A stretch of DNA of 64,000 bases from Styela clava (taxonomy: Eukaryota): the NCBI RefSeq assembly GCF_964204865.1, contig NC_135252.1:2728001-2792000 (forward strand). The letters are read 5' to 3'. The position numbers were made by a program, and so were the translations under genes. The first letter of the stretch is position 1. Every line of letters starts with the position of its first letter. Below, piece by piece: positions 4,049 through 64,000 of this stretch. Below the pieces are notes generated by a model. It saw only the letters and a list, made by a program, of their open reading frames with translations, made no database searches and was not told the DNA's origin.

Positions 4049-7000
4049 ATGAAACTCTTAAAACCAACATGGGTGTCACATGATGGTATGTAACTTAGAC
4101 ATATACATTTGTTATCGAATTCACCGTTTATGCAGTTATAGAATTAATTTTTTCAACGCAGAAATGAAGTCTCACTTCTGCACATGTGAAACTCAAATGG
4201 AAATTAGTATACATGTGAAGCTGTAAAGGCTTTTTAAAATATAATAGGGTAATATGATTCACGAAAAGTAAGAACTGAAAATTCAGATGATAGAATTGCT
4301 TGATTATGGTATTAGCAACACAGCTACAAGACATTTTCATATGTATCCATAGGCCTGTAGGCATAGCTTGTATCACCAAAATGGAATCATCTCATTCTAA
4401 TTAAGGTGTTGTAGTTTCGTCAATTCAGTGGTCTCCGTCCGTATTGTCTATGATACGAACTTTTTTATATAACAATTTAAAGGTACCGTACTATACTCAC
4501 AAAAACCAGCTTTTCGATATATTGTTTTAATATGGCTTGCAATTTTTCATCCCTTGTAGTGTTTTGACCATCCACATGGGCTTACCTGTCTATTGACTTA
4601 TGTTATTAAAGTAATTCATTTTAGACTGCAGCAAATGTTGATTTCTAAGTTAGAGGTCACATCGGCAAATAAAAAATGATTGAGATACGAAAACGTTTTT
4701 GATAAAAAGTGTCATTGATGAATTTAAAACAGCCATCCCAATTTAAGTGCTGCTTGCGGCTCAAAAACTTAATCTGATGATTTCTAAATTGGCCATTTTG
4801 TCCTATAAAAACGATGAAAACAATAAAAATAAGTGGATAGGTTCCTGGAAGTAAAAGTTCATTTTTCGGAATCTTGTTCGTCTACTTTCTACCATTCTCC
4901 TTTCACCCTTCATCTGGCAAGTTTTTGAATACTAATAGAGCCCAGTATCTATGCATTGATCGGGTTAGCCTTTTTTTTTCTTTTTCAGTTTTTCTGAGAC
5001 TTTTTTTCTCCTATTGTCAGAGTTGTAAAAATTGTATAACCACTTACTGGTTTAACTAGTAGATTGATATTGGCTTTAATGTATTCATCAGGTCATGATG
5101 CTAAGAACCAAACCCCCTTTTTTTACACAACTTACACAATATTTCGTTTTGTTGTCCAGGAAACCCAATATTTTCGGTTGATTTGCATCCTGATGGATCT
5201 CGATTTGCGACAGGAGGACAGGGAGATGGAGGAAGCAGTGGAAAAATTATTGTTTGGAACACATCGCCTGTGGTAAATGCCAAAGATGAGCATGATGAAA
5301 ATGTTCCTAAAGTTTTATGTGTTATGGATAATCATTTAGGTAATTTGTTGCTTTTAACTTACATTTTTCATATGTTAATATTTCAACTAAAATTCAGTCG
5401 TACGGTTTAAATTTCTAATTATTAGCTGAAAGCTGGAACAAAAAGACTAATGATTTTATATAGGCTATTGATGCAGGGTTTCCCAAACTGGGATCTGCGG
5501 ACTACTGGGCCAATTTGGTGGGGGGGGGGGGGGTCTGATCGACCTTTATTAATGATTGATTTCAATCAAAAAGCCAATTGAATATTTTTGGTTCATCGTT
5601 GTGGACGAATTGCTGTCAGAAAAGGCAATTAAAGCTTTATGAATCAATATGATGACAAAATTCAGGTCAACCCTTGCTGGCGGTAGAGTCAGGCCTACGG
5701 GTTTTCTTGTCACAAATTGCTCAGACAATTAATAAATTGTGCAGTCATAAGCAACCTCATCCATCATAGTATTGTCGTTATGTTGTTGTGTTGTAAGGAT
5801 GAATTTCATTCTTTTTTCAGCATGTGTGAACTGTGTCCGATGGTCATGCAATGGAAGATATCTTGCATCAGGAGGAGATGATAGAATAATTATGATATGG
5901 CAATTTGCAGGTATCTCACTGTGTTTTTTTACTTTTGTTATTGTAAATGCATTCTTACCTTTATGCTAACTCTCCATCAAGTTTTTCCTAAAAGAATTAC
6001 TAAATCAGAAGCATTGACTGTGACATGCTGTAGTTATGTAGCCTACATATTTTAATTATTTATATATACTAGGTTATGGAGGACCTATCATGTTTGGGTC
6101 ATCAGAAAACCAATCTAGCGGATTAAAAGGAGAAAGATGGAGAGTTGTTCATACTTTAAAGAGACACACAGGAGGTACAGAAGCTCCATCAAGTATTGTC
6201 TTATTCAGCTCAGGCTGGTATATGGTAATTTGAAATCCAATAACCTGCCGATTTTGCAACACAATAAAAATATTAAGAGATATCAGAATAATTTAGAAAT
6301 ATTCTGTACATATATTTTAACAATAAAAATCCATTATCCAAATTCATTATTGAAAAGAACAATTCAAGAAAGCCCTATGCCAAAATAGGATACTTTTCAA
6401 GGTGACCGTACAGTTGAACCCACATACATTTTAATTTATATGTCCGCGGGTTCAATCTATATGAAGGTGCTAAAATCCTTGGGTTAGGGTTAGTATGGGT
6501 TCAAATATACATAAAAAAAAATTTCCATAGGTGCAATAGTATGTAGGTAGAATTGTTGTGGGTTCAAATTACGGGTTCAAATGTACGTGGGTTCAAATGT
6601 GATGTAACCATTTTTCAACTATATCAATATCTTCGACGAAAATTGCTTAATTCAATATTCGCTCCTAATACTATGATTTTTATTCGAAATCTCCATTTTT
6701 GGTAGCCCTAATCAAAGAAAATGTTGTGTCTAGTTTAACTTGAGTTTCAAACATTCAATGCCTGGTGCCATGGTGAGATTTAAATTGATTGATGTACCTG
6801 ATATTGTTTTGTTTCAGATATCCTGCATTTGGCTTGGTCACCCACTGATCAATGGTTAGCATCTTGCAGTATAGACAATACTGTAGTTGTATGGAATGCT
6901 TTGAAATTTCCTGAAATTACAACAGTCCTGAGAGGACACACCAGTTTGGTAAAGGTATGCAAGTTGGCGCAATCTAGGATATTGATATTCAATTCTTTTT

Positions 7001-10000
7001 TAGTTGATCATAGTTTTATATAATGGCACTGTGAAAATAGCTGCTTCCCTCATTTTACATTTGCTGTGTTTTTATATTCTTTCCAGACAATTAATCAAAC
7101 ATTGAGTTGCAAGCCATCTGCAGCCCTCACTTTGACTTGTATGCTTTTTTCTCAAGCATAACCTCCACAGGTACACATAACCAATCACATCATTCACAAA
7201 TCATAATATTTATTTGCCCCGTCAAAGTCCTGAAACTGCTGACTTGCTTTAATTCTTGGTATTTTTTTTATGTCAGGGTGTGACTTGGGATCCAGTAGGG
7301 ACATACCTTGCGTCTCAATCCGCTGATAAAAGTGTAAAGATTTGGAAAACTTTGGACTGGAAGCTTGAGCATACTGTTACAAAACCTTTTGTGGAGGTAA
7401 TTTTAGAGAGCAGTTATGAGAGTTATTCAAGATCCCTGCTGCACATTATCACAAATAAATTTATCTAACAAATGGTAACCACTGGAATCACTTAGAATAG
7501 GTGTCTTCATTGTTGCTCTTGCTACGGCATCCTTGTATCATATTCATACGAATCCATCAGTGGGTAGTTCGTCGCACAGAAAATTAATTGATAGCGCAAG
7601 TTTTATTTCAATTTTGGAGTACCCAATGAACAATTACTATTAAAAAAGGAGTGAATGAGTGAAGCACTCTCTCTTTCATCGCCTTATTCAGGGTCTAATA
7701 AATAGGATAGTTATGTCAAATTGGAATTCAATTTTTGAAATCTTTTCACTCTATATATCAGGGGACAGGGGTTATTCTGCTAGAGCCTATTTCAGATAAA
7801 AGATGCTCGGAGTCACAATAATTAATTGCAACAAATTTTTTTCCAGTGTGGCGAAACAACCCATGTTTTACGTTTGGATTGGTCTCCTGATGGTGGTTAC
7901 TTGGTATCAGCTCATGCAATGAATAATGCAGGACCAACTGCACAAATTATCGAAAGATCAGGATGGAAAACTAACATGGATTTTGTTGGTCATAGGAAAG
8001 CAATTACATGTACCAGGTAGGGAGCATTGTTTCATCATAATTCTTTACAGAATTGTAATGACAATAATAGATAAGAAGTGTTAAAAATTGTTATATAGCC
8101 TACTTATGAAGCAGGATAAAGCTAGGACAATTAGAAAAGTGAAATCTACAACATCATCTGATTTGAAATATGAATAATTCAGAATTCCATTATGATGAAT
8201 TGAAAAGGTTTTAATGATTTTTCATGGCCAGTATACTGAAAACAATTCATAGCCATGACTATATAAATTGACATTTTTATTTAGTATATTGCAGAGATTA
8301 GAAATTTTTCAAACTAATTTCTGCATTTTCTGCCTGCAATGCTGCAAATCACCGGAAATATTTTGATTTTATTAACATTTAATTATGACAGGGAGAAGTT
8401 AGTTAAATTATATGCACATTTGATTTGCAACGATACTTCATATTTGTTTTGCGCATATAAGTGATCATACCATGATCCCAAGGCTGAAGGTCTGGTGTAA
8501 CCAGCTCTACTCTGGTCTGGACACCAGTGTTAACTCTAAGGAAATTATGAGTGCGAAAGTGCTTCGCAGTCGAAAAAAAAAGTGCGAAAGTGCTTTTTCT
8601 GATTTTAACTAGTTAGGTGCCCTAGCTTTCGTTTAAACTCATTTCAAACAGCATAGATACTCGAAAAAGCGCTCCTTCCGTTAATATTGTGAATTGAAGT
8701 CTTTCCGTTAACAAGTTTCGTTTAAACTCTTGTTAAAATCAAGCGAATTCATCAAAGGACACCTGATAAGCACACTTGTCGGGAATAAAAGTTTCGTGCA
8801 ATCAACCACCAGCGTCAGTAACGAAGCGCACTCCCGCCTGAACAGACTAGCCTTGCAAACTTGTTTCTACCATCTAACAGACACCGATTGATACAAGCAG
8901 ATATTAGTTACTACCGGCCATAGCTAGGGAGGGGGATCATTTGTACAAAACCCGGGCAAAATGACATCCCCATCACCAATATCGCTTTAGTATAACACGC
9001 TTCCTCGTCCGAAAGAATATGCTTGAAAGTAGTCCGCCCTCTTCCCTTTTAAGAGATTGGTTAACGGGAGTTTTTCTTTGGGAAATAACGCAAGATCACC
9101 ATGAAAGTACCGCTGTTTTTATAGATAGAGTGACCTACTTTCTATCGAAGATTTTTTTTCCGAAATATTATGCAAGATCACTTTGAAATCCCATTCATGA
9201 GCTAGCTTGGCCTAATTTATATTATACTGTCTCACGGATTACCCTAAGACGTGTAATTTCCAAATATCGACTTGCATTGGTTTGCGTGCCAGTTAGTTCA
9301 AATCGGGTAGAAAACATTATATATTTGCAATTTTTTTTAGAAATGCCATGTACTTCCAGCATTTATAAATAACGCTGTCTCTAATGCTGCAGACCTAGTA
9401 TGAAATATTCGCATCTCAACGCCACTTTCAATTACACTAATAGTAATGATGACACCAAAGAGTTTTCCTTTGCGAAGGTACAGGAAATACAACAGGGTGA
9501 TTCTTGAAAAAAACATGAATGTAAAAAATAAACCCAAATAATTTTGAGTGTGACACGAAATACCAATCCTTTTGATAAATCTTTTTTAGTCGACCACGTG
9601 AACGCCGAAATCCTGGAAATTAAAGTTGAAAGAGAAGTACGCATTCTCACATAAATAATCGCGATATATAATCGTTCATGTGCACAAATCTCACATGTAG
9701 CATCGGTTAGTTGTGCATGAAATGTAAAACTCTTATGTGTGTGCGTTTCAATTTCAATAAAATCAAATTCGTTTTTCCATGCACCATTACTTGTAATTTT
9801 AATATTAATTGCGCTCCGAGTTTGTAAAGTTTAGAAACCTCTTGTATATACCATTACCACTATTTTGATTGGCTAACTAAAGATAACACGTAACCGCTTT
9901 TCGGCAACATGGTATTCGTTTTATATCTGCTTTGAACAGAGAAAAAAACATGTGCCCTCTCAGTCATCTGATCACAATCGAAAATCCGTATTCATTTTTT

Positions 10001-22000: not shown

Positions 22001-25000
22001 TATACTGCAAAGGAATATAAAAGTCATTGTTTTTTCTGTGGTGTTTGTTATCAGTTTAGATTAGGGCCCGACCGATACTGCCTTTTTGAACCGATACCGA
22101 TACTGCTAGTTTTCCAAAACTAGGCCGATAAGCCGATAACGATGTTTCTTCACATATATTTGTGGCAGCATTTCTGTTCTGAAATACTTCTCAGTCTTTA
22201 GAGCGTAGCGAGGTTCAATGGTTTCTATTAGCCTGCGGAATCCATCATCTTGCACTATTGCAAATGGCCTGTTGTCAGTGGCTATCATCTCCATTATTAT
22301 TTTATCAAGTGATTTCGTTCTTGCGTCATTTCCATGCCATTTATTAAATTTATCCATTATGTGTTCCCATGAAGGTTGCCGATTAAACTGGGAAGCTTCA
22401 GCTGGCCTTTTTCGCGTTAACTGCGTCTGCGAAATCTCATCATACTTGCTCTTGTGTTTCGATCTGAGATGACTCCACAAATTACTGGTGTTTTTCTTTT
22501 TGGAATCGGCGGAACCTTGACTTAACAATGATGAGCATATTTTACAAAGTACACCATCACTGTGGCATACAAAGTATTCCCATACTTTGCTCTTACCGCT
22601 AGAACCAGCCATCTATAACATACCAATACAAGAAGTTAAATAATACCTTCAACGACTAAAGCGCAAGGGAAATCAAGCGCCGTGTAAACTACGCGAAAAT
22701 TCTCTATCTAGCGTATATTATTTGACACAAATAAGCCGTTCACGTGTTCTATTGCTTCGATTTGTAAGCCACCACGCTGCAAACTTGCTTGCAAAGTGTG
22801 AAATCCCGTGTCGCAATCGTCCGTGAAACCGCTCTTGATAAGAGAGAAATAGAAATAGTGAAGAAAAAGAGTTTCACGCAGAACCGCTCTCGAATTAAAC
22901 AAGCGATAAAACTGCTTTCCCGGCAACCTTCAACAACTAAAGCGCAAGGGAAATCAAGCGCCGTGTAAACTACGCGAAAATTCTCTATTTAATCTAGCGT
23001 ATATTATTTGACACAAACAAGCCGTTCACGTGTTCTATCGCTTCGATTTGTAAGCCACCACGCTGCAAACTTGCTTGCAAAGTGTGAAATCCCGTGTCGC
23101 AATCGTCCGTGAAACCGCTCTTGATAAGAGAGAAATAGAAATAGTGAAGAAAAAGAGTTTCACGCAGAACCGCTCTCGAATTAAACAAGCGATAAAACTG
23201 CTTTCCCGGCAACCTTCAACAACTAAAGCGCAAGGGAAATCAAGCGCCGTGTAAACTACGCGAAAATTCTCTATTTAATCTAGCGTATATTATTTGACAC
23301 AAATAAGCCGTTCACGTGTTCTATCGCTTCGATTTGTAAGCCACCACGCTGCAAACTTGCTTGCAAAGTGTGAAATCCCGTGTCCCAATCGTCCGTGAAA
23401 CCGCTTTTGATAAGAGAGAAATAGAAATAGTGAAGAAAAAGAGTTTCACGCAGAACCGCTCTCGAATTAAACAAGCGATAAAACTGCTTTCCCGGCGCAA
23501 TTTTGACACTTTGGCAGTCACGTGATTAGCCGATAACTATCGGTAAAATTAGCCGATACCGATAGTTCAAAATTTGTGAAAAACAAGGCCGATATATCGG
23601 CCGGCCGATATATCGGTCGGGCCCTAGTTTAGATATTGTACGTTTTAATCTGCTTGTCTGACGGCTTAGTATAATTATTCTAAATCATTCCTAAATTCAA
23701 GAATTTCTCATATCAAATGTAATGCAATTCGAATATCCGATTCGTTTTGGACATTCCCGCAGACAACTGTGATTTTAGCCAAAAAAATTGCTTTGACAAT
23801 ACTGTTTTATTGGCAGTAAATAACACATCCAATCAATCTTTTTATTTTCAATCCAGGATTTTGGTTAATTCCATAGATGAATCAATTGAACACTGTGCTG
23901 ATTATAAATCAGATACATCAAGTTTGAAAGGCGGAATACTGGATTCACTCCAAAAGAAAGCTACTGGGTAATATTACAGGGTTGCTGGTGGTCACTTTGG
24001 CTTAGTGGTAAATGCGTTGAACTTAACTTAATGCGTTGAACTACGATGGCATCGCAAGTTAAAATCTTAGGTTTAAACCCCATGCCCACCACCTCACTCA
24101 GGGTGTATTTAATTGGGTAGCAGATGATGAACCAGATACATTTCGGCCCTTTCAAACTTTGGTAGTTTCTTACCTAGAAGTGGCTGCCTCTCTAGAGCCT
24201 TATTCGGAACAAAAAGTATTTAAATACGTTGTATAAAACTACTAATACATCAATTATTGTTTTTCCATAAAATCATTGGTGAATAGAAAATTGTTGAATA
24301 TAAATAAGTTATCATAAAGTCAAAATTATTATCAAAGCTATTTGTTTCTGCAAGTCATTTCAACTTTATAATTTTCATTTTTCCATTTTATTTTTTCTTC
24401 AGTGTTGGTGCCTGTGCCTTGAGGATGTTTCATTCAAACACAAATTTACAACGGTGTGCAACTGCAGTCTTTTTGGAAAGTAGAGTAGAAACATGCATCG
24501 CTCTCAACTCAGTGGAGGAGTACAGTCATTGGATGCTATCTTATATAAGGTGGTAACATTGTGTAAAAAGTTTTTTGTAATTGCCTAATGTTTAAGCAAT
24601 ATTGTCTTGTTTTTAGAGATTCATTGAAGAATAATTTAAAAGGTGTAGTTATCCGTAGTTTCTGATTTAGTTATCCCAGATAGAATACTTATGATAGCAT
24701 AACACAATTTTTGTGGCTTTCAAGCCTTGGAAGAATCCTGTATAATTTTTAGTTCTGTTTTTTTTTTTTTCAGATATTTAGTTAATGAAGGCCTGGATGT
24801 GAGATTGCGAGAGATTTGTGATGATATGTTAGGTCCTACTCATCTGAAATCCAATGAAATCATGGAGTCACCTACAACATCGTCATCAACATGGAAACCC
24901 TTTGTATTGGTATAATAGAATTTTACTGCTTTAAAGAATCAACTCTGAACTCAAATTGAATATTAGTTAAGGTGTTACGAGATGTACAATTTAGCTATAA

Positions 25001-33600: not shown

Positions 33601-36600
33601 TATTAAAAAGAAATCGATAAAATAGAGAGAGATATAATAATTATGTATGCGTGAAATAATTAAACACTTTTAGGTGACCACGGACCACTTCCAAATTTAA
33701 ATACTGTATAAGACTATCAGTGTATGCTTTAAATCAGAGGAGTGCAATATCCAGCCCGTCGAACATGTTTGGCACGTTAAAGACTTTATTATCCATTATT
33801 ATTATTTTAGGAAGCTTTATTTATAGGAATTTGAAAAATTATCCATACAAAAAGTAATCTCGATGCCACTTTGATATATCATCTCACTTGCTTAATGTGA
33901 TCTCAATCGTATACCAAAGTGGCAATAATTGTGGTGGCACTTCGGCATGCGTTTTATCTCATTAAGATATTCTCATCGAATTCGATTTCTAACCCTAACT
34001 AAAATCACACTACTAAGATCGCATACCAAAGTAGCACGGAAATCTTTTTTTTGCTAATGTTAGCTCAACTTCAAGTTGCTAGAAACTAATAGGTTGTTCG
34101 ATGGTCTGGCCCTCAAGTGTCGCCAAATTTTTTTGTTTTGACCCATTGCGATAAACCTTACTTTAGTTTTTGTCAGTTTGCATGCTCACCTGTAATCAAT
34201 TTTTATTTATACAGTTAGAGACTAAGTTTTTATAAATTATTTTATTGTCTGATTATGAAGTCATCTTGCCGTCTTGATTATGAAGTCGAAATAAGCTTAA
34301 CAATACTTAGGGTGGAGATCAAAAAGGTAGTTTAACCTCGAATCAGAGTTTAACTTTGGATCGGCGGTTTAGGTCCGGATCAAAAAGGTGGTTTAACTTT
34401 CTGTGACGTAAATCTCGACTTAAAATCGGCGATTTTTTAAACCTGGTCTGGAGGTGGTTTAACTCGGTTTGTCCAGTGCATTTGGATTGCGGCGTTTGTC
34501 GTGTTGGATGTTATCGCTTACCGTACAATCTATATTGTATTCTGGGGCGACAAAAGGAGTAGCAGGGAGCTCTGTACAAGCGTCACGACGAATAAATAAT
34601 TGTATACCTGTACCACGAGGCTGCGATATGTAGCATTCGCGGTGGTACCTGTGCTGTACCTAGTACCTACCGTACTACGCCCGAACAAAATTATTTACAA
34701 CGTGGAATGGGGCTATACTATAATAAATCTAGTAAGGTAAATACATACCCAGCGTATTGATACATTTCTGTAGGCTATTTGCGTTTTTTAATTTTCTTAG
34801 CAGTTTTTGTGAAGATTTATTTTAACTTAGATTGTAGACTACAGTTATACCAGTAGCCTATTGCTATATGGGTTCTTGTCATAAACAGACATAGGGCCCA
34901 GTATTTTAGTACAGTTTCGTTGATAAGCAGTTGCGCAGTGGTACCGTCGAACAGATACTCCTAGTCCTAATACAGTAATATAAACTTCAAAATGTTTTAA
35001 CAAAAATGATATATTTTCAGATATTTAGATCTACCAGTGCCCAAAAGATTCCTTTTAATTATATTTTGTGTATGAGCAGAACTAAGATTTACCTACGATA
35101 TCCATGTATCACTACTGCACTGTGCCCCGGTGTATGTATCTTGTCATCGGCTAATTCACAAGTCTGCAAGTTCCCGAAGTAGATAGCAGAAGGTTGACTG
35201 GATATTTTGATGTACACCAATGTAAAATCATATTGCATGTTATTGGTATGCTGTTTGCACAGATGTACGATATTTATGGTATTAATGATTCTGACTCTTG
35301 CTATATAAAATGAAACTAGAATATTGAAGTACCGTGACCATGAATTTCACCAAATGCTAGATTGCAGAAATGAGTATATTGATAACTATATATTGCCAAT
35401 AACTTATCATGAATGCAAAGGTTCATGCTATCATAACATTTCTTTAATGTAACATTGTTTTCTGATTTTTCATTTATTTCTACAGCTGTTTCAAATCAAG
35501 TAAACTGTCTGAGTGCCATGATGATGATCAATTTCATCAGCTCTATTGGTAGAGCAAATTTGTGAGTTTGTCACTATTTAAATGTCATATTATTTGTATG
35601 TAAACTGTCCTAAATTCACGTTCGTATCAGCTTCTTTAGTATCAGCTGTTAAATGAAAATTATTTTTAGTTTGTGTGTATAATCTGTATTATTCGTATAA
35701 TGTGAGGATGGTGACCGTACATTTGAACCCATGTACATTTGAACCCATGCGTCTATCCACGGGTTCAATCTATATGCGGGTGCTAAAACCCATGGGTTAG
35801 GGTTAGTATGGGTTTAACTATCCGTGAAACAAAAAAAATTCCATAGGTGCAATAGCATACAGGTGCAATTGTCATGGGTTCAAATGTACGTGGGTTCAAA
35901 TGTAATGGAACCTGTGAGGATACTTTCATCAAGGTAAATTTCTTATTGGTATTGTCCCAGATATGTTCAAGTAACCGAGATGTGACAAACTTTTCAAAAT
36001 CATTCCCATTAGTCATTTCTTGTTACATGCAGGCAAAACTAGTGTCACATGATTTTAGAGTAGAGCAAAGTTGTTCGACATGCAATCACAATCGAAGACA
36101 AAAGAGCCTTCATTTAATATCTGAAAACTAAAAATACTCTACTGTTTTACTTTTCCAAATTCATATAATTAAATATACATTGGATTTTATGTAATTCAAA
36201 AATATCATTTCAGAATACAAAAAAATCTGTACAAATTCGAATACAAATTATTCGGTTTTAGTCATTGCCTAGGTCGAATTTGGTTCTTTAATATCTAGCG
36301 CACTTCATCAATATACTATCTTTAACCCTGTATTTTCATTTATACTGTTCAGGTCATGAAGACAAACAACTGTTATGGATAGGATTATAGTAAAAGTGTT
36401 GTCAAGTCAAGATTGCAGCAGTGCTTTATTTTACGACTTCGTGTCCAACAAATATGTGGAACCCGCCTTTGTGTCCAACAAATATGTGGAACCCGGTTAA
36501 CTTAAGCTTAACAAACAAATTATTCTTGCATGCTAAAACATTTGAAGCAAAAGTAATTATGTCGATTTTTCGTCACTTGGCGAGTCTTTCGCAGAAGAAA

Positions 36601-38265
36601 TAAATAAAACTTTTAAATAGCAACGAAAGCAACAACTATGATTGCACCTGTGTCTGTGTGCATCTGTCTCAAAGCTGTAGAGCCAGGATAAAATTTAGCA
36701 CCTCTTCCGAATTGATTCTATACTTTTTCCATTTCTTGAATGTCAGTACATTTTAGCAGTCATTTGAACAAATGAATATTAGTTATTTTTGCAATACAAA
36801 TTTTCAAAATAATATTATGTTAAATATGTAGAAGCCTGTGGCCCAGAACTTGCCAGGGATAGGTTTTCAGCTGAAGTGTGTTCATTTCGTCTGTTTTCAC
36901 TCTAAGTAGGATGTGGGTTCTATAATTGAAGTCTGTTTGTTGTTACGCTGAGGTTTAGGAGAAAATGTTAGATTCAATTGGTGTTGTAGACCAGGGTCGT
37001 CCAACTCGTGGCCATCGGGCCATATGTAGAAGCATTTCTAGGTGTTTGCAAAAATAGCCTGTCAAGACAGACCATAACTCGTCTTGTTGAAGAGCTTGGG
37101 AATTCTATCGCGAGAATTTTAATCGCAAAAGCGGGATATTTTTTATTGTATTCCTTGGCGCTTGAGGAAGCGCTGACATTAAGTTTACTGCTCAGTTGGT
37201 GACTTGCTATCTTTTTGCGGGTAGTTAATGATGATATAAAATTACCGTGGAGACCGCAGCCATTGCCCCTGTTAAGGGTTTGACTAGAAGCATTGATTTG
37301 TTCGACAGCTGTGATAAAAATGATTAAGCGTCTTGTCTTTGGCTAAACTTTCGGGAATAACCACTGATGATGACCCGTCAATGTTTGGAAAACAACAGTT
37401 TTATTGTTCTAATAATTGTGAAAAATCGATGTGAGGGTATTTTTTTATTATTAACCTGTAGTAGTGTAGCAAAACTAGATCATAACTAACATGTCAATTG
37501 GCCCGCGCAATTATTAATGAATTACATGTGGCCCTTAGACCAAAATGGTTAGCCGACCCTGTTGTAGTTGTAGACTGTACCAGTAGTGGGAAGAATTCTA
37601 TTTATGATAAAGTGTTATTATTTCGATATTTCGTGTGATGCGCGTCAGCTCTTCGTAGTTCTACCGCCCAGATTGTTTTGCTTCGGCAATATCAACGAAA
37701 TACATCAAAAACCGACTTTGCAAAGACAGCAAATTACAACAAAATTGGGTTCGCGTTGTCATCGCCATGGGAATACGGGGTCAAAGAGCAACATGCCACG
37801 ACGTTTTAATGAAATGCCTCGTGGCGTCGGACTTAAACCACGATTAGTTAAGTAACCGCTAAACTAGGTTTTTGATCACCGGTTAACTATCGAAGTTAAA
37901 CCGAGTTTAACTAACCCGAGATTAGTCTTAATCCAAGTTTAAGTTAAGTGAGGTTTTTGATCTCCACCCTTAAACTAGGCTATAATAGAGTAAAATGATA
38001 AAATTAGTCTACTGAATTATTATGTTATCCTGGTTTAGCATAACTATACAACACAACACCATTTAGTAATTATTCTGTTATTTGCAACACTCACCGATTG
38101 TTGACTGCTACCAACAATCCTACGCTTTGCTTTTCGAATAACACGGGTTTGCAAAACATCATTATCCGCTGTCTTGAATGTTCCAGAGTTATCGTCATCA
38201 TCAACCTCATCTTCCTTGTCCCAATTTTGGTCTGTTAAGTATTTATCAGCGACACGCTTCGACAT
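30686..38265 (-). CDS. NUP50: Nucleoporin NUP50 (importin-alpha-binding N-terminus, FG region, Ran-binding domain)
   Basis: Exons 38265-38095 (MSKRVADKYLTDQNWDKED...VIRKAKRR), 33518-33290, 32956-32832, 32613-32501, 32174-31847, 31764-31685, 31593-31359 (CKLYYKKEGAYADKGVGQLYLK), 30796-30686 (LIRVKTSEDADKL...TGA); all GT-AG. Confidence 0.95.
35710..35912. mobile_element. GGGTTAGGG-containing MITE nested in the Harbinger element
   Basis: Clear similarity to 6401-6609; inverted ACATTTGAACCC / GGGTTCAAATGT motifs. Confidence 0.75.
36992..37561 (+). mobile_element. Charlie/Buster-type hAT derivative with a decayed transposase fragment, nested in the Harbinger element
   Basis: Ends cagggtcgtccaac ... 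gttagccgaccctg; ttgtag on both flanks; translation SLSRQTITRLVEELG...YSLALEE resembles the Buster SLSRxTVxRRI...FSLALDES block. Confidence 0.75.
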
Positions 38266-39950
38266 CGTGGCGCTAGACCTAGTTCACTCATTCACGAATC
38301 GCAGAATTGAGCAAGTAACGTGCAAGTGACCAAAATAACCCTGCTGAGGAACGAAATACTGTATCTTCAATAAGGCACATATATGAGGCACATCTGGCTT
38401 CTAGTGGAGGCATATGCCACGAGAATATCGAGGCATCTAAAAAAGTTCGAAATCACTATCGGGACAATAAAAGAATAAATTCATTTTATATTTTGTAAGT
38501 CTTAGTTTCATATAACGTTAGGCCTATTTGTAAATATTAGAGTAGGATAAAGTAAATATATAGTTTAAATTAAAAGTAACACTACCTGTGAATGCGTGGT
38601 TGAGGAATGATTCTTCAAAATTCTTGCCACAAAATAACTTCGGGACGCGTTTATTGTAATAATAAATTTAAATATAAATAGAAAAAAATCGGCATTGATT
38701 GAAGAAAATTTGTATTGTGATAAATGAAAAATTTAATTTTTCAACAAAACTATATCTTTGTAATGTTAGCAATAAACTAAAGCCTTCAATTCGTATTTTT
38801 ACCGACTGTGGTTCTGTGCATTCACATGGCATTCGTTCTGCTTCCAAAGGAGCGTTTTTCAATCCTCGAATAAACTCAAATTTAGCTCAATATTTAATCA
38901 GAATCATTGGGCTCAAAATTTGAAATGATATTCCTGACATTTTCAAAACCTTCTCTTATAAAAAATTTAAATCTGAGTTCATGAAACAAATCATATCCAA
39001 ATATTAATTATGAAGGCAAATCTATTTTCAAATGGATACTGGTGTGGATATGTCATGTATAAGAGTGTATTTATACCTGGTTCTCCCCAGTTTGAAAATA
39101 TTTGTGCCATGTACATGTCCAACCGTATACTCTTTAATCTACCAATATTTTCATTTTTATCAAAATTTTAAAACCTACATCTCTAAATTGTGTAGAATAT
39201 CGTATTATAATATACAGTATTGTAAAAATATATTCACAGTTTTCTTCCTTGCCAAACCATGATTAGACATTTCATAATATTGCACGCTTAATTTTTACGC
39301 ATGGTACCGCTTACATTTACATGGTGGATGTTTTATCTATGACTTCCCTGGTGTGTAACGTTATCTATGACTTAACTGGGATGTGCGTATGATTGCAACC
39401 TAACAATTGTACTGCCCAAGTAAACACTAGTTTACTAAATTTTGCTTCAAATTTCAAAACAGATCCGGCCCGTGGAGTAATAATAATCCAGCCCTCGACG
39501 CTTCACTGAATTTAAGTAACAAAACGGCTGTTATGACGGTTATATTTTTTACGTAACAGAATTTATTGTGAGACACGTGTAGGCTAAACTAAATTATATT
39601 ATACCCTAACAAGTATATATTCCACAAAACCTCGTTTAATGAGCTTATAGACGAATGGCAACAAAACGCAAAGTTGATGCTAAGTGCAAAGGGTTCAATG
39701 GCGCTGAAAATATTCGAATGAAATTTTTTCGGATGCAATGCAATGATGAAATCAATCTATATTCAATTCGAGAAATGTATTCCTTCTTGATTTCATTTTT
39801 TATCGTGAAAAGTATCATTCGTTCGTTTTTTCAACTTTCTGAAAATAGCGAGCGCGCGACAAAAGGTTGCCGACCCCTGCCAGGGTGGTCGCTAGAAAAG
39901 CAGGAAATTTGAAGGTCAGATGAGATTACGAATAAAATGCGTGCTAACTC

Positions 39951-40252
39951 ATTACGTATCGATTTTAATAGGTAAGTATGTTGATAGGTATTTGTTTGTC
40001 TGTATGTCTGTCTGTTAGATGCACGCGATATCTCACAAAAGCGAGATTGAATCTGCACCAGATTTTGCATGTGCATTCATCATATGTCGTACCAGAAGCC
40101 TATTGATTTTGGATGAATTATGTCGTATAATTTGCGAGTTATTAATTAATTAGTGATGGGACGCAAGGCGTCACTATGAAGTAAGAGCGCTGTTTTGGGG
40201 GTACCCTAACTTTCGATCGATAAGTCTTCGGTCTCTGACCGATATTCTCGTT
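39951..40252 (+). mobile_element. HINE/DINE-1-like (Helentron-associated) element
   Basis: Same family as 45935-46322: (TGTC)n microsatellite, 3' gatcgataag, and tcggt...accga hairpin. Confidence 0.7.
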
Positions 40253-42918
40253 TCTTTTTCGATACGTTTTTATTTATTTCAGGTTGATGAATGTTACCCC
40301 GAGCATCATTTCTTGTTTATTTCCGTAACAATTACAAATCAGCAATAAGTTTGTTATGTTTGAATAGAAATGATAGATTTGAACATGTGAGCGAGTTTGT
40401 GAGCGCCAACTCTCCAAACCACTCGCAAAATCAGAGCTGAATATTTGGCAATAACAACGTGAATATAGGGAGAATCTTCCAGGGGTGAAGGAAACATCCA
40501 TACTGGTCAGGTTTTATTCGATTTCTATTTTGAAACCCATATTGTGGAGGAAGGCAGGAAAGAGCTTTCAGACTTTGAAAGGAAAGTGGTTATTCTTTTC
40601 AATAGTGAAAATCCGACTTTCATACATATTTCGAATGGTCATCGAAAACTTTTAATTCTCGTATTTTATTCTTATTTATTATGTGCTTTCTGGTTTGACG
40701 AAAAAATATTGACGAAATTATCTATAAATTAAAAATAAATTCTCTCTCCTCCTTTTCGCAACTATCACACGCAGAAAACACATTATGGAGGGTATTTGTC
40801 ATCATAAAAACAAGTGTACAGGACAGTGTCACGGCAAATAACATAATACAATATTCCGTCTTTCTGCGATGTTAACACGATATTTGCTACTTTATTGTTG
40901 TATGTATGTCAATATTATTGTATGTTATTAGTTTATCCGAAACTTCAATGAACAATTGTTAGCTGCTATAAAGCCCGTCTTATTCAACACTATAAGCATA
41001 AGGGATAAGATTAATATTCAATGCCATTCCGGCTTCAATAAAATGATGAAATTGACTCAGGTAAATAATAAGGGCGAACTCTCGAAAAGTATATCAGGTG
41101 ACGGCACATTTGCACCCATGTAAATTTATTTACTCACGTAAATCGCACCTGTATACTTTTGTACCCACCAAAATTTGCACTCATAGATATTTCCACCTTG
41201 AAAATTGGCACATACGCACATCTGATCCCATACTGCATACGGTTCTGTTGCCCGGGGAAAGTTTCTGATAACGATGCCACCTATTCGTATATTATCTGAT
41301 ATGCCTATATCTTCTGCTTTGGCTATTTCATGAGATAGTTGTGGTTTGGAATCGCAAAAATCTTGTCACCTGATCATCACAACGCTAACTTTAACTGGCC
41401 AAGCCTCCATGTATAGATTACACGGGTATAGATTACATGTATACAGGAGCAGAAGTAGTAAATGGAAGAATGTTCTAAAAATTGTAACCCGAATACGGTT
41501 AAGCACATTAAGTATATTACATGCGTGTCATGTATCGTATATAATATATCGTATCGAAATCGAACATTAAAGCTGGGCCTTTCGTTCTTACTCAGAAGTG
41601 AAGCAGACTCATCTCTTTCAGGCGACCACTGAAATGCTAACAGATACTGAAACTTTGATACCGTAGAATTATGGTGATAAAACAAAGTTTTACAGAAACA
41701 TTTTAGACGGTCCATGAGCTTTACGTGAAACACAAAATAGCAAATCGGAATTAGTCTAGAACTTGCTAAGACAACAGATCGAAGGTAGCCGCATACCAGA
41801 CTACATGGGAAGGCATGATGTTTTATATAAAAGCAAATATTATATTTCTTTTCCAATCGAGATCAATGGAACTTTACGCACACATGGCAAGTAAAATGCA
41901 GTCACCGAATGCTGCCTGAATCACACCAAATGTTTAAGATCTTGGAACATAAGGACTTAAAAAATATATATGTTACAATTCATTGGTATTGAACCAGTCC
42001 ACAAGTTGTATATTTCATTAATTTTGTATTTTACTTTCAACGTATTTTTCGCTATGGTGGACCAGTCGTACTAAAATTTCCAATGTTAATCCTTCTTATT
42101 TTGACAACGAACTTTTAGATTTTAACGCAATCTGGATTAAACACATGTTGGTGTAATTGATGCCTCAATTAGGAGAATTTAAGTTTGTGTCAGGTGAAGA
42201 AATTTGGAGATAGTATTGGTAAGTAAGCGATGCGGAAGGGCAAATAGATTTGAAAAAGTTGAAAAAAAAAACGATCGTCGCGGATTAGTTTGAAAAATTT
42301 AAGAGATAAGTGATTTATTTTCAATAATATATAATACTTTGATAACACTTATCTAACATCCACTCAAGTGATGCACACAATCAGTCAATGTCATATGCGG
42401 TGGTGGGATTCAACCGGTTCGCACCGGTTCTATAAAACCGTCTCAAAGAAGTTTATGAGATCAGCGAACCGGTTAGCATTATTAAAAAAAACATGTAAAT
42501 ATGACTTTTGCGATGGAACCGGCTGACAAAATATTTGAATTCCACCACTGGACATATGCATATATATACTATCAATTTAATATACATATGAAGACATTTA
42601 TATAATGTACAACCAATGTCATATGTCTTATATTCAACTCAATATACATATACAGTGACGTAAAAACACCGCCAATCCATTTCATATTCATTTACTTGCT
42701 GTATATTATGTACTGGTGCGCTTGCATCTACATGTCGCAAGCTTGGAAGTCATATTGATATAATGAGTGCGTTAAGATTAGGGTTTTAAACATAACTTTC
42801 AGGAACTCCAAAACGGCTTTTGATGGAAGTTACTTATAATAAGTGTAAAATAAATGTAATAAATTATTGTGATATCAGCATCATTTAGCTTTATATGCAT
42901 ATAACTTGGCAGTATATG

Positions 42919-46427: not shown

Positions 46428-47408
46428 TTATCTTATTGCTTCACGTTTGAGAACATCTAGTTTGTTGTTTTCTTCTTTAAGTTGACGCTTGTTGTCATTT
46501 CTGTACTTGATTCTTCTGTTTTGGAACCAGATTTTTACTTGCGCGTCTGTGAGTCTGAGCTTATTGGCAAGCGCCCGTCTTTCAATACCAACTATGTATT
46601 GCTGGCTGTTGAACTCATTTTCCAAATGCTCCAGTTGTTTTTGAGTAAACACGGTCCTTGCTCGTTTTGACTTTAATTTCTGAGGTTTAGGATTTGATGA
46701 ATAAAAACACACATTTGGCTTAATATCTTTGCCGACTGAACGTTTTGTCTCAATAGGTACATACGAAATTGACGGTAGTTTATGATACATCCAATTTTGC
46801 TGCACAACTTTGCTTAATCCTGGATGGAAATAGTATGAATCATTGGTATACTTATACATATGACTGTAGCATTTTGTAGGTGGTATATATCCGTTGCTTC
46901 TTATTTTGGGTCGAGGTGATTGAGATAGAGCAGACTGACTGTGGCTCGATTCTGGTCGTGATTTATTGGGATCACTGCCATAAATTTCACTGCCATTTCC
47001 ATCCGTTCTAGTAATATTCAATTCGTCGACATCTTCAAATGACGAAAATCCCGAATCAAGTGAATCGTCTTCTCTTATTGTTGGCGGAGTATTTTGAAGT
47101 TTTCTTTTTTTGCTTGGGCTTTCGGTCGAATGTCCCAGTATTGCGTCAATTGTGAATAGGGTATGCTTCTTCTTGTTTCGGTGGTTGTTGAACTTTGCGA
47201 CTGGTTTGCAGTAAATTGATGAGTGGCAGATTTTGCTCTTCTGATTTACAACGGTAACTTTCATTGAATCTGAAACATCATCCGAAGAAAATTTTCTTTT
47301 TCTTGTGGTAATTTCTTCTAAATCTGAAACGCCTGCGTAATTGAAGCGAAGAAATGGCGTCCATTGAGCATTTGAGAGAGCTTGGTAAGGATGGCGATAA
47401 GAAATCAT
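46428..47408 (-). CDS. Not: Not-class (Noto-like) ANTP/NKL homeobox protein, intronless, 326 aa
   Basis: eh1 motif FTIDAILG; homeodomain KSKRARTVFTQKQLEHLENEFNSQQYIVGIERRALANKLRLTDAQVKIWFQNRRIKYRN. QQYxVG and RRIK favour Not over Emx/Vax. Confidence 0.85.
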   Translation of the reverse strand: MISYRHPYQALSNAQWTPFLRFNYAGVSDLEEITTRKRKFSSDDVSDSMKVTVVNQKSKICHSSIYCKPVAKFNNHRNKKKHTLFTIDAILGHSTESPSKKRKLQNTPPTIREDDSLDSGFSSFEDVDELNITRTDGNGSEIYGSDPNKSRPESSHSQSALSQSPRPKIRSNGYIPPTKCYSHMYKYTNDSYYFHPGLSKVVQQNWMYHKLPSISYVPIETKRSVGKDIKPNVCFYSSNPKPQKLKSKRARTVFTQKQLEHLENEFNSQQYIVGIERRALANKLRLTDAQVKIWFQNRRIKYRNDNKRQLKEENNKLDVLKREAIR

Positions 47409-60754: not shown

Positions 60755-61015
60755 CGTTTAGATTGCATTAGATTTGTTATGCCAATCAGAATAACTTATG
60801 TACGTTTGTTTAAATTATTTTTTGTTTATAAATTTTTTCTATTAGAATAATATAAATCGAATATCTTATCCCAGCTACAGCTGGATCCAATTCATGGTAA
60901 GTAGTAATAGGTATTCATTTATCCGGATGTCACCAGAAAAATGTTTCATGGAATAATAAAAACATCTGTAATCATCATCAACGAAACATCTGCTTACAGA
61001 CAGGAAAGAGAAATG

Positions 61016-61052
61016 TATAAAATGCGACGGGTGTGGACAGCCTACACAGTCG
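61016..61052 (+). promoter_or_regulatory. Core promoter of the repeat-peptide gene (TATA plus Inr-like)
   Basis: TATAAAA at 61016-61022, with CAGT about 30 nt downstream and the ATG at 61094. Confidence 0.55.
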
Positions 61053-61093
61053 ATTTCCATCTACCAAACAAGACAACTTCAAACTGAAGAAAA

Positions 61094-64000
61094 ATGGCGG
61101 CAAAGATTGCTGTATTTATCCTGGCCATGATGGTATGCAGTTTGGGATTGATCAGGTTAGTTGACATTGATTGCTTCATTGCTTCATTGCATCATCGAAT
61201 GTCGTCACTTTTTAAACATTCTGATTCATTTTAATTTTGAAATGAAATAAACCTTCAAATCCTACCAATGTCTTTCAACCGGATTTTTGTAACTAATAAC
61301 TAATGCAATAATCATTCATTTTCCGCAGCGCAAAGTCTGTCGAGAATCGTAAGTTGATGAATTTCTAGCTGTAAATAATTATGTCGAATAGGTTCTAAAC
61401 TTCAACAACAATTTCTTCATTTCCTGCAAAATGTTCAAAAATTCAGTTTAGTTTTCGTTACGAAACTCATTAAATTGTTGAAGTATAATTGAACATGTGA
61501 CTCACTTTGCCCGATACTTTCAATTTTGTAAAAATTTTTGGATTCATATTTCTCATATTTTACTGAAAAAGCATCGATCAAATTACAGTTTTTCGGTGTT
61601 CTCAGGCTCAAAAATTTGAAACATCGTAACTAACTAAGATATTTAGTTTTGTCTGATTACAGTCGAGTATTTTATGTAAAACTTATTTCTTCTTTATAAG
61701 TAAGTGGTAAAACTGGCAAAATGTTGAAATATCGGCTCTTTACGATATTTTTGTAATATTAACAGGTGACCAGTCCGAGAAGGCATTGCGTTCGGCCGAA
61801 GATAAAGAGAGAATATGGCCCGCCTTTTTTGCTTGGGGAACGTTGGGAGACAAGGACACAGGTAATTATAAACAGGATCTACTTCAGGTGACATCTCGGT
61901 CAAAATGTTGAAATATCGGCTTTTTACGATATTTTTGTAATATTAACAGGTGAGCAGTCTGAGAAGGCATTGCGTTCGGCCGAAGATAAAGAAAGACTAT
62001 GGCCCGCCTCTTTTGTTTGGGGAAGCTTGGGAGACAAGGACACAGGTATTATAAATAGGATCTACTTCAGGTGACATCTCGGTCAAAATGTTGAAATATC
62101 GGCTTATTACCATATTTTTGTAATATTAACAGGTGAGCAGTCTGAGAAGGCATTGCGTTCGGCCGAAGATAAAGAGAGACTATGGCCCGCCTCTTTTGTT
62201 TGGGGAAGCTTGGGAGACAAGGACACAGGTATTATAAATAGGATCTACTTCAGGTGACATCTCGGTCAAAATGTTGAAATATCGGCTTATTACCATATTT
62301 TTGTAATATTAACAGGTGAGCAGTCTGAGAAGGCATTGCGTTCGGCCGAAGATAAAGAGAGACTATGGCCCGCCTCTTTTGTTTGGGGAAGCTTGGGAGA
62401 CAAGGACACAGGTATTATAAATAGGATCTACTTCAGGTGACATCTCGGTCAAAATGTTGAAATATCGGCTTATTACCATATTTTTGTAATATTAACAGGT
62501 GAGCAGTCTGAGAAGGCATTGCGTTCGGCCGAAGATAAAGAGAGACTATGGCCCGCCTCTTTTGTTTGGGGAAGCTTGGGAGACAAGGACACAGGTATTA
62601 TAAATAGGATCTACTTCAGGTGACATCTCGGTCAAAATGTTGAAATATCGGCTTATTACCATATTTTTGTAATATTAACAGGTGAGCAGTCTGAGAAGGC
62701 ATTGCGTTCGGCCGAAGATAAAGAGAGACTATGGCCCGCCTCTTTTGTTTGGGGAAGCTTGGGAGACAAGGACACAGGTATTATAAATAGGATCTACTTC
62801 AGGTGACATCTCGGTCAAAATGTTGAAATATCGGCTTATTACCATATTTTTGTAATATTAACAGATGAGCAGTCTGAGAAGGCATTGCGTTCGGCCGAAG
62901 ATAAAGAGAGACTATGGCCCGCCTCTTTTGTTTGGGGAAGCTTGGGAGACAAGGACACAGGTATTATAAATAGGATCTACTTCAGGTGACATCTCGGTCA
63001 AAATGTTGAAATATCGGCCTATTACCATATTTTTGTAATATTAACAGGTGAGCAGTCTGAGAAGGCATTGCGTTCGGCCGAAGATAAAGAGAGACTATGG
63101 CCCGCCTCTTTTGTTTGGGGAAGCTTGGGAGACAAGGACACAGGTATTATAAATAGGATCTACTTCAGGTGACATCTCGGTCAAAATGTTGAAATATCGG
63201 CTTATTACCATATTTTTGTAATATTAACAGGTGAGCAGTCTGAGAAGGCATTGCGTTCGGCCGAAGATAAAGAGAGACTATGGCCCGCCTCTTTTGTTTG
63301 GGGAAGCTTGGGAGACAAGGACACAGGTATTATAAATAGGATCTACTTCAGGTGACATCTCGGTCAAAATGTTGAAATATCGGCTTTTTACGATATTTTT
63401 GTAATATTAACAGGTGAGCAGTCTGAGAAGGCATTGCGTTCGGCCGAAGATAAAGAGAAACTATGGCCCGCCTCTTTTGTTTGGGGAAGCTTGGGAGACA
63501 AGGACACAGGTATTATAAATAGGATCTACTTCAGGTGACATCTCGGTCAAAATGTTGAAATATCGGCTTATTACCATATTTTTGTAATATTGCTAGGTGA
63601 CCAGTCCGAGAAGGCATTGCGTTCGGCAGAAGATAAAGAGAGAATATGGCCCGCCTTTTTTGCTTGGGGAATGTTGGGAGACAAGGACACAGGTAATTAT
63701 AAACAGGATCTACTTCAGGTGACATCTCGGTCAAAATGTTGAAATATCGGCTTATTACGATATTTTTGTAATATTACTAGGTGACCAGTCCGAGAAGGCA
63801 TTGCGTTCGGCCGAAGATAAAGAGAGAATATGGCCCGCCTTTTTTGCTTGGGGAACGTTGGGAGACAAGGACACAGGTAATTATAAACAGGATCTACTTC
63901 AGGTGACATCTCGGTCAAAATGTTGAAATATCGGCTTATTACGATATTTTTGTAATATTGCTAGGTGACCAGTCCGAGAAGGCATTACGTTCGGCCGAAG
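61094..64000 (+). CDS. Secreted multi-repeat peptide precursor (3' end beyond the window)
   Basis: Exon 61094-61155 (MAAKIAVFILAMMVCSLGLI, signal peptide), exon 61329-61348 (SAKSVEN), then 96-nt phase-1 exons starting at 61766, 61950, 62133, 62316, 62499, 62682, 62865, 63048, 63231, 63414, 63597, 63781 and 63965 (partial). All are GT-AG, in frame and stop-free: G[D/E]QSEKALRSAEDKE[R/K]-[IWPAFFAW/LWPASFVW]-G[T/S/M]LGDKDT. Confidence 0.85.
61717..64000 (+). repeat. 183/184-bp tandem array (96-bp exon plus 87/88-bp intron), at least 12 full units
   Basis: Period read directly; type A units (1, 11, 12, 13) flank type B units (2-10). Confidence 0.97.

Follow-up and report, generated by a model that had tools for sequence, protein, structure and literature searches.

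A spliced tandem-exon gene behind an apparent satellite of Styela clava, predicted to encode a 14-unit peptide precursor with a clavanin-type front end

The stretch of Styela clava DNA analysed here (64,000 nt; positions 2,728,001 to 2,792,000 of contig NC_135252.1, RefSeq assembly GCF_964204865.1; hereafter the window, C3:2728001-2792000) ends in what looks like a 183-bp satellite. We find that this apparent satellite is a real, spliced and apparently abundant gene, hereafter the window gene. It comprises a TATA box, a signal-peptide exon, a micro-exon, 14 in-phase 96-nt exons and a short terminal exon (Table 1). The best explanation, and one that we consider probable, is a transcribed and spliced gene for a secretory polyprotein of 14 peptide units that carries a clavanin-type front end and is processed into peptides. 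A sequence-only reading of the window had proposed a multi-core secreted precursor with one core per exon; the splicing and the arrangement of one unit per exon behind a signal-peptide exon hold, while cleavage and secretion remain predictions.

Coordinates are window positions, those beyond 64000 being window-equivalents read on in the same assembly, and exons, phases and splice boundaries were computed base by base with a script. The TATA box, the signal-peptide exon, the 20-nt linker exon and the in-phase 96-nt exons all lie where the sequence-only reading had placed them. The repeat exons now total 14, of which 12 are complete in the window, the 13th is cut at 64000 and the 14th lies outside; the final exon, which had been sought past the window, is present there with a stop codon. 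The donor of exon 1 is gttagt, and all 96-nt exons have AG/../GT boundaries (AG/G..CAG/GTA; the first base of unit 7 is A) and are in phase 1. Within the array the acceptors vary (aacag, gctag, actag) and always keep AG, and the sole length difference among units is intronic (gtaatt versus gtatt). The array runs for 13.9 copies, to window-equivalent 64263, 260 bp past the window, with 97% matches among copies and no indels except 1 nt in the intron (Tandem Repeats Finder).

The units fall into two types according to their first residue, a D-type (units 1 and 11–14) and an E-type (units 2–10). The two types differ at seven exon sites, one of them synonymous, and four of the five residue changes are in the core. 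The script also bore out the D/E difference, the replacement of R by K in unit 10 and the synonymous TCC/TCT variation among units that had been read by eye. The protein sequences of units 2–9 are identical, and we therefore attribute them to recent expansion by unequal crossing-over. The encoded precursor has ~490 residues, made up of the signal peptide, a short linker, 14 units of 32 residues and an acidic tail. Because reading on past each donor meets a stop 4–16 codons into every intron, any long product needs splicing.

To assess transcription, we used contigs from sequencing runs, among them four runs of one 2020 study (X1–X4) with transcriptome-sized contig sets (51–62 Mb). Of the words sampled from the gene, 0.19–0.44 occur in the transcriptome-sized runs, about the fraction that is exonic, and 0.51–0.60 in genome-sized runs of 2024. 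Contigs of X1–X3 and of a genome-type run, X6, were compared with positions 60900–62060 of the window, the 5′ part of the gene. The GT..AG joint 61155>61329 occurs in X1 (depth 643) and X2 (depth 531), the joint 61348>61766 in X2 (531) and the joint 61861>61950 in X1. A further joint in X1 (728) goes back by 96 positions, which is the look of a D-type exon spliced to the next D-type exon on a short reference. In addition, the loose contig ends in front of the two repeat exons carry TTGGGAGACAAGGAC, with which the previous repeat exon ends (X1, X2 and X3), and those behind the first repeat exon (behind 61863) carry GACAAATCTGAAGAAGCATCTCAATCATTT, with which the terminal exon starts, here joined to a repeat exon (X1 and X3); the 3′ junctions are represented by such loose ends only. 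Coverage of the same interval in X6 is even, with zero joints. Because the predicted GT..AG joints occur in RNA-type contigs and none occurs in the DNA run X6, we conclude that the gene is real and spliced as predicted; these joints, from exon 1 to the micro-exon, from the micro-exon to unit 1 and from unit to unit, are the ones on which the sequence-only reading had staked its gene model.

The contig depth in X1 is 34,000–41,000 on exons versus 0–21 in introns; contig depth cannot rank expression, and the contrast fits abundant mRNA with a trace of unspliced precursor. The micro-exon is joined to an E-type unit in X1 (61348>61950) and to unit 1 in X2, a difference that could reflect exon skipping or an array difference between animals. 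Some loose ends carry hybrid D/E unit starts (GACCAGTCTGAG). Polymorphism of the array or skipping of its exons is probable.

The open frame of the array, taken alone, is weak evidence of coding. By chance alone, 32 codons stay open with P ~0.1; the 14 copies do not count as independent, and the spliced repeat exons lack stops in two of their three frames. The second stop-free frame (61766–64000, spliced exons, offset 0) differs from the frame set by exons 1 and 2. It had been argued from the sequence that the variation among units behaves like coding sequence; this does not stand, as the exons vary as much as the introns (14 of 96 exon sites versus 7 of 49 sites in the upstream part of the intron, plus a few more in its downstream part). 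Exon and intron being equally variable, the within-array variation does not prove a gene, and because the array is too young or too homogenised the comparison is uninformative on coding constraint. The proof of the gene lies in the spliced RNA contigs and in the comparison between paralogues.

Table 1. Features of the window gene (window positions; we denotes window-equivalent positions past 64000)
Feature	Position	Strand	Remarks
TATA box, TATAAAA	61016..61022	+	Read in the sequence; RNA-type contigs start at ~61046-61063, 25-45 nt downstream
Exon 1, 62 nt, ATG at 61094	61094..61155	+	Signal peptide MAAKIAVFILAMMVCSLGLI + 2 nt; ends in phase 2
Exon 2, 20-nt micro-exon	61329..61348	+	(S)AKSVEN + first base of a split Arg codon; junctions on both sides
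Tandem array, 183/184 bp	61717..64000	+	96-nt exon + 87/88-nt intron; Tandem Repeats Finder
Unit 1 exon, D-type	61766..61861	+	DQSEKALRSAEDKER-IWPAFFAWGTL-GDKDT(G)
Unit 2 exon, E-type	61950..62045	+	EQSEKALRSAEDKER-LWPASFVWGSL-GDKDT(G)
Unit 3 exon, E-type	62133..62228	+	Script
Unit 4 exon, E-type	62316..62411	+	Script
Unit 5 exon, E-type	62499..62594	+	Script
Unit 6 exon, E-type	62682..62777	+	Script
Unit 7 exon, E-type	62865..62960	+	First base A, making the junction codon Asp instead of Gly
Unit 8 exon, E-type	63048..63143	+	Script
Unit 9 exon, E-type	63231..63326	+	Script
Unit 10 exon, E-type	63414..63509	+	KEK replaces KER ahead of the core
Unit 11 exon, D-type	63597..63692	+	Core IWPAFFAWGML
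Unit 12 exon, D-type	63781..63876	+	Script
Unit 13 exon	63965..64000, continuing to we 64060	+	Cut by the window end
Unit 14 exon	we 64149-64244	+	Outside the window
Terminal exon	we 64421-64470	+	G-DKSEEASQSFDDNDH-stop; ~420 bp past the window end

The front end of the window gene matches that of the clavanin genes. Clavanins are 23-residue, C-terminally amidated hemocyte peptides (PMC10608444, PMC9966394). We located their genes with a degenerate pattern for the invariant middle of the clavanins, used as a probe only, and took the genome copy for comparison; the probe has two matches, both on contig C1. The clavanin C open frame reads KSEEEK-VFHLLGKIIHHVGNFVYGFSHVF-G-DDQQDNGKFYDHYAEDNGKHWYDTGDQ-stop, with a 23-residue His-rich segment, in keeping with the published clavanin length, and G-DDQQ after the peptide; it is preceded by a signal exon of 47 nt (MKTTILILLILGLGI + 2 nt) and a micro-exon of 20 nt, TGCAAAATCTCTGGAGGAAA. 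The first exons of the two genes (62 nt in the window gene, 47 nt in clavanin C) both have lengths of 2 mod 3 and end in phase 2. The micro-exon is 20 nt long in both and encodes AKSVEN and AKSLEE, respectively, and in paralogues of the window gene it encodes AKSLE exactly. In both genes the cargo exon is entered in phase 1 through a split Arg codon and starts with an acidic propiece.

Furthermore, the micro-exons of the family and of clavanin agree at 13–15 of 20 bases, in contrast to the introns on either side, which do not align. In the 377 Mb of the genome the word AGYGCAAARTCTNTNGAG has 8 occurrences, versus 0 in the reversed control; the sites correspond to two clavanin genes, two clavanin-type front ends and three family genes (the window gene included), with one site unexplained. 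In clavanin and clavaspirin genes, as in the window gene, the acidic K/E-rich propiece ends in E-K/R right before the hydrophobic N-terminal residue of the peptide. As far as the encoded residues go, the peptide would in both cases be followed by Gly-Asp and an acidic extension (L-G-DKDT-G-DQS in the window gene). Together, these features are good evidence, although not proof, that this front end and that of the clavanin genes have a common origin. The family had seemed unrecognisable from the window; the front end relates it to the clavanin genes, and RefSeq models its paralogues as uncharacterized proteins.

The unexplained micro-exon word (C17:348524-348541) has no signal-peptide exon upstream and a poor donor, and may be a pseudo-exon or a chance match. 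The two clavanin-type front ends (C1:22043500-22049500, minus strand, and C3:16859500-16865500, plus strand) have 47-nt signal exons, MKTTILILLMLGLGI and MNTTILILLMLGLGI, and an identical 20-nt micro-exon. A crude scan did not find their cargo exons, and they may belong to clavaspirin or to undescribed clavanin relatives.

The window gene belongs to a family with at least 11 loci in the genome searched (377 Mb in 380 contigs). The 11 related signal-peptide exons comprise one in the window gene, three at C2 12.02–12.04 Mb, two at C3 10.64 Mb and five at C3 17.61–17.65 Mb; no clavanin genes were found beside the C3:17.6 Mb cluster. All paralogue cargo exons begin with the spacer [DN]QSxxxxx[ST]xD[ND]xDxE[KR], and their cores are wholly different from gene to gene (FWGLFVPLVKKAIEEI, MWPAGMFSWGVL, IWPVGILWVL, TWFLWVM, IFELHRLTEVAKLI, FPLQLIVNIVKAIEGL, FWWIPLVAKIVNAVER, FWWIPIVEEIVRAVQR and MWPAGMFSW-G). 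In all paralogues the core is nevertheless preceded by E-[KR] and followed by a hydrophobic-Gly-[Asp/Asn] junction. Specifically, the sister loci LOC120336745, LOC120342297 and LOC120342639 and the FWWIP cluster at C3:17.6 Mb share the signal peptide, the micro-exon, the spacer and the terminal acidic exon, and likewise have one unit per exon; they hold 1–6 units, compared with 14 in the window gene, the largest array observed. The window gene and parts of the C2 genes form a subclass whose cores are short, uncharged and rich in W and lead into a conserved G[DN]KDT tail, whereas other members have 16-residue amphipathic cores. The 5′ region of the C2 paralogue, including promoter and introns, is 84% identical to that of the window gene.

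Three structural details of the C2 genes stand beside these results. The C2b paralogue (C2:12031001-12041000, minus strand, positions 5048–7398 of that stretch) has a repeat period of 447 bp, because the long intron located ahead of unit 1 in the window gene has been duplicated along with each unit; the duplicated intron matches window positions 61379–61560. The terminal exon of the window gene stops at ..DDNDH*, and that of paralogue C2a continues as ..DDNDHEK-GTYWTWWMR*; on this comparison, a last, different core seems to have been lost in the window gene through the stop. The RefSeq models of the C2 paralogue place their start at an ATG further upstream, within the TATA box (..EREMYKMRRVW..). 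In the window gene a TGA closes the corresponding frame (61013–61093) three codons ahead of the true ATG, and RNA contigs do not begin until ~61046, so the RefSeq start is probably mis-called.

Database searches returned the family from Styela clava only. A profile built from an alignment of 16 different exon units, searched against 1.84 billion representative proteins, gave two matches only (E 2.8e-27 and 6.4e-16), both RefSeq Styela clava entries named 'uncharacterized protein' (LOC120342297 and LOC120336745). A word-indexed search with one RefSeq paralogue returned only isoforms of LOC120342297, LOC120342639 and LOC120336745, proteins of 57–182 residues; the profile database contains representatives only. 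The earlier suggestion of a lineage-specific gene is thus upheld as far as databases reach. Two RefSeq protein models correspond to the C2 paralogue that we read in the genome. Isoforms of the RefSeq paralogues differ in unit number, some having one to three units, which fits cassette exons. Pfam has no family for any of the 16 exon units at E up to 1, the open full-text literature mentions neither the core motifs nor the RefSeq gene or protein identifiers of the family, and nothing relevant was found in the literature on Styela neuropeptides or the Styela peptidome. A profile search of Protein Data Bank chain sequences raised catalase, which was rejected as chance matches only (E 0.14).

Comparison between paralogues reveals unequal constraint along the unit. 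We aligned whole units (intron plus exon) of three genes and partitioned the columns. Between-gene identity is 0.86 in the spacer, 0.79 in the last 60 intron columns, 0.73 in the whole intron, 0.76 in the G[DN]KDT tail and 0.47 in the core. Relative to the adjacent intron, conservation is therefore higher in the spacer and far lower in the core, where most alignment gaps lie, in multiples of three. Conserved flanks around a variable core fit a multi-core precursor. A conserved leader with hypervariable cargo is the hallmark of host-defence and toxin precursors such as those of frog skin peptides and conotoxins, and neuropeptide precursors show the reverse. Judged from these alignments, the divergence pattern is of the host-defence or toxin type, not the neuropeptide type.

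By analogy with clavanin maturation, we propose the following processing. The signal peptide would be removed at ISA/K, like INA/K in clavanin, and the precursor would be cut after E-K/R before each core. The sequence-only reading had placed convertase sites at KALR and next to the core: the former is unconserved, its Arg being K or H in paralogues, whereas E-[KR] directly before the core is conserved. A further cut may fall between Gly and Asp/Asn after the hydrophobic residue, with Gly as the amide donor; the junctions read F-G-D in clavanin and L-G-D, I-G-D or L-G-N in the family. The predicted products are ~14 uncharged 11-mers per molecule, five of IWPAFFAWG(T/M)L-NH2 and nine of LWPASFVWGSL-NH2, or, if the second Gly-Asp junction is used, 16-mers ending in ..GDKDT-NH2. 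Unequal crossing-over between exon-intron units would account for the growth of the array, and the symmetry of each unit exon leaves the frame intact when a unit is added, dropped or skipped.

The cores of the window gene have a side-chain charge of 0 and a hydrophobic moment of 0.1–0.2, compared with 0.4–0.6 for the 16-residue cores of other members. Because they are uncharged and lack an amphipathic moment, the window gene forms a distinct subclass whose activity is hard to predict. Frog temporins include short, uncharged or weakly charged, amidated hydrophobic peptides. A role in host defence, or as another secreted effector in blood cells, as for clavanins, is the most likely one, at about even odds within the reading as a processed polyprotein. 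Secretion, cleavage sites, amidation, cell type and function are all inferred here by analogy.

Several observations weigh against a processed, clavanin-derived polyprotein. The contigs cannot give the unit number per mRNA, contig depth is a poor expression measure, and the RNA label of the runs is a guess, though one supported by the spliced joints. The clavanin link as read from sequence draws on gene structure, the 20-nt exon and short motifs; the signal peptides of the window gene and clavanin are only 33% identical and differ by five codons in length, and a word-indexed search with a paralogue (E up to 10), insensitive for such short proteins, lists no clavanin. The C-terminal cut is ambiguous between an 11-mer and a 16-mer because two Gly-Asp junctions follow each core (L-G-DKDT-G-DQS). 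The cores, which differ from the clavanin pattern of one His-rich cationic amphipathic 23-mer per precursor, are unlike clavanins and most antimicrobial peptides in being uncharged and non-amphipathic, and an antimicrobial role is less obvious for them than for the 16-mer paralogues. Finally, release of amidated, secreted peptides is itself a prediction by analogy.

Some observations favour the idea that the product stays uncleaved, as a secreted, ~55-kDa repetitive protein of the tunic, an adhesive or a granule matrix in which charged and Trp-rich segments alternate. The units have no classical dibasic sites, cleavage of the units is presumed by analogy, the cores are uncharged and non-amphipathic, and the very high contig depth resembles that of structural secretory products. 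We nevertheless regard an uncleaved product as unlikely: the front end is common to genes known to be processed into peptides, the core-flanking positions are fixed while the cores are replaced outright, which is unexpected for a structural repeat, and some paralogues have one to three units only.

A neuropeptide or hormone precursor is very unlikely. Many identical copies stand behind a signal peptide, Gly follows the core, and the W(X5-6)W-Gly copies resemble the myoinhibitory peptide (allatostatin-B) motif W(X6)W-amide, which has a protostome distribution: WPAFFAW-G is W(X5)W, and the paralogue core MWPAGMFSW-G is W(X6)W. However, no mono- or dibasic site follows W-G or L-G, and the contrast between the most conserved spacers and the least conserved cores runs opposite to that of neuropeptide precursors. 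Moreover, neither the profile nor the word-indexed protein searches list an orthologue outside Styela clava, and other family members encode 16-residue amphipathic helices.

We give equally little credence to the units being precursors of heavily modified small aromatic blood-cell peptides of the brominated-Trp, plicatamide or halocyamine type. S. clava styelins contain 6-bromotryptophan and other modified residues (PMC10608444), and among ascidian hemocyte peptides Styela plicata makes the octapeptide plicatamide and Halocynthia makes halocyamines (PMC9966394). The cores are likewise short and aromatic (W, F), and the invariant flanks could be recognition sites. Yet the sequence gives no pointer to a nearby modifying enzyme, no known small peptide matches the cores and no search supports the proposal, which is pure inference. 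The long open reading frames (ORFs) with a Pfam match beside the gene in the window encode a homeodomain and a BED zinc finger (zf-BED), not enzymes.

That the array is a non-coding satellite or transcribed repeat with an accidental open frame is hardly credible, for although the frame by itself is weak (P ~0.1 per frame, non-independent copies, two of three frames open) and exons vary as much as introns within the array, an ATG and signal exon, a micro-exon, the units and a stop-bearing terminal exon are joined by precise GT..AG splicing, paralogues keep the frame through 3n indels with a spacer more conserved than the intron, and RefSeq models the paralogues as coding.

Returning to a processed polyprotein with a clavanin-type front end, the finding matters in several respects. 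S. clava is the source of clavanins and styelins, still used as antimicrobial leads, and a related family in it is unnamed in RefSeq. At least 11 further genes of this genome appear to reuse the clavanin front end for cargo peptides that are unrelated. A 14-unit exon array is easily collapsed by a repeat masker or a short-read assembly. Cargo that evolves faster than neighbouring introns, next to a constrained propiece, makes the family a clean chordate case of a mode, familiar from frogs, cone snails and spiders, in which the leader is conserved and the peptide hypervariable. The finding also supplies synthesisable peptide predictions and a shared candidate processing rule, E-K/R before the peptide and Gly-Asp after it.

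A bolder version of this proposal, which we hold to be a long shot, is that the gene is a factory of undescribed ascidian blood-cell effectors, namely clavanin-derived, uncharged, Trp/Phe-rich, amidated and possibly brominated 11-mers made 14 at a time. If that were true, the family would stand beside the peptide arsenals of frog skin and spider venom as their chordate counterpart, and the exon cassette would be the unit by which it diversifies and sets its dosage. If, in addition, modifying enzymes recognised the invariant flanks, the small modified aromatic peptides of ascidian hemocytes, whose genetic source has long been sought, could originate from this family.

Elsewhere in the window, positions 46428–47408 (minus strand), ~14 kb upstream of the peptide gene, hold a 326-aa single-exon ORF with a C-terminal homeodomain (PF00046, E 3.8e-20). 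Positions 22106–22612 (minus strand) hold a 168-aa ORF with a BED zinc finger (PF02892, E 2.5e-8), which could be a transposase remnant or a domesticated gene.

Among the closest known systems are the clavanin genes themselves, which encode one 23-residue His-rich cationic helix in a single cargo exon. The window gene has 14 such exons, in each of which a longer propiece precedes a predicted 11-mer that is uncharged, rich in Trp and without His. Other systems resemble the window gene in layout or mechanism. In spider venom, linear-peptide precursors (cupiennins, latarcins) carry many short peptides with anionic linkers in one transcript (PMC7889660, PMC8290080). The spider peptides are cationic and amphipathic and have no homology to the window gene. 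Their precursors are cut at a processing quadruplet motif (PQM), after an Arg with Glu within four residues before it, and an inverted motif (iPQM), an R with E within the three residues behind it, stands at the linker start. DKER and DNER of the family fit the PQM form, and a PQM-like E-x-R or E-K precedes every core; where the iPQM would stand, paralogues have K or H for the inner R of KALR-SAE. Membership in the spider-type PQM/iPQM processing system was dropped, given an ascidian genome and an inner Arg that is not conserved. The cassettes of ribosomally synthesized and post-translationally modified peptides (cyanobactins and the fungal Kex2-processed dikaritins), which the sequence-only reading had invoked along with neuropeptide precursors, are alike in layout only, the window gene being a spliced animal gene without KR sites.

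A likeness in gene architecture exists to amphibian skin-peptide genes. The magainin and caerulein genes of Xenopus laevis have tandem-repeated exons with one peptide copy each and near-zero divergence, explained by unequal crossing-over and a higher peptide yield per transcript (PMC3731216). The window gene has the same tandem peptide exons, a likeness of mechanism and not homology, since the Xenopus genes are unrelated in sequence, come from the skin gland of a vertebrate and have precursors processed at dibasic sites. Xenopus genes have few copies, up to about four to six, versus 14 in the window gene. The layout of one peptide per tandem exon is therefore not new in kind, with its published precedent in Xenopus magainin and caerulein (PMC3731216); what is new is the family itself, its apparent derivation from a clavanin front end, the size of the 14-unit array and the uncharged, Trp-rich predicted cargo.

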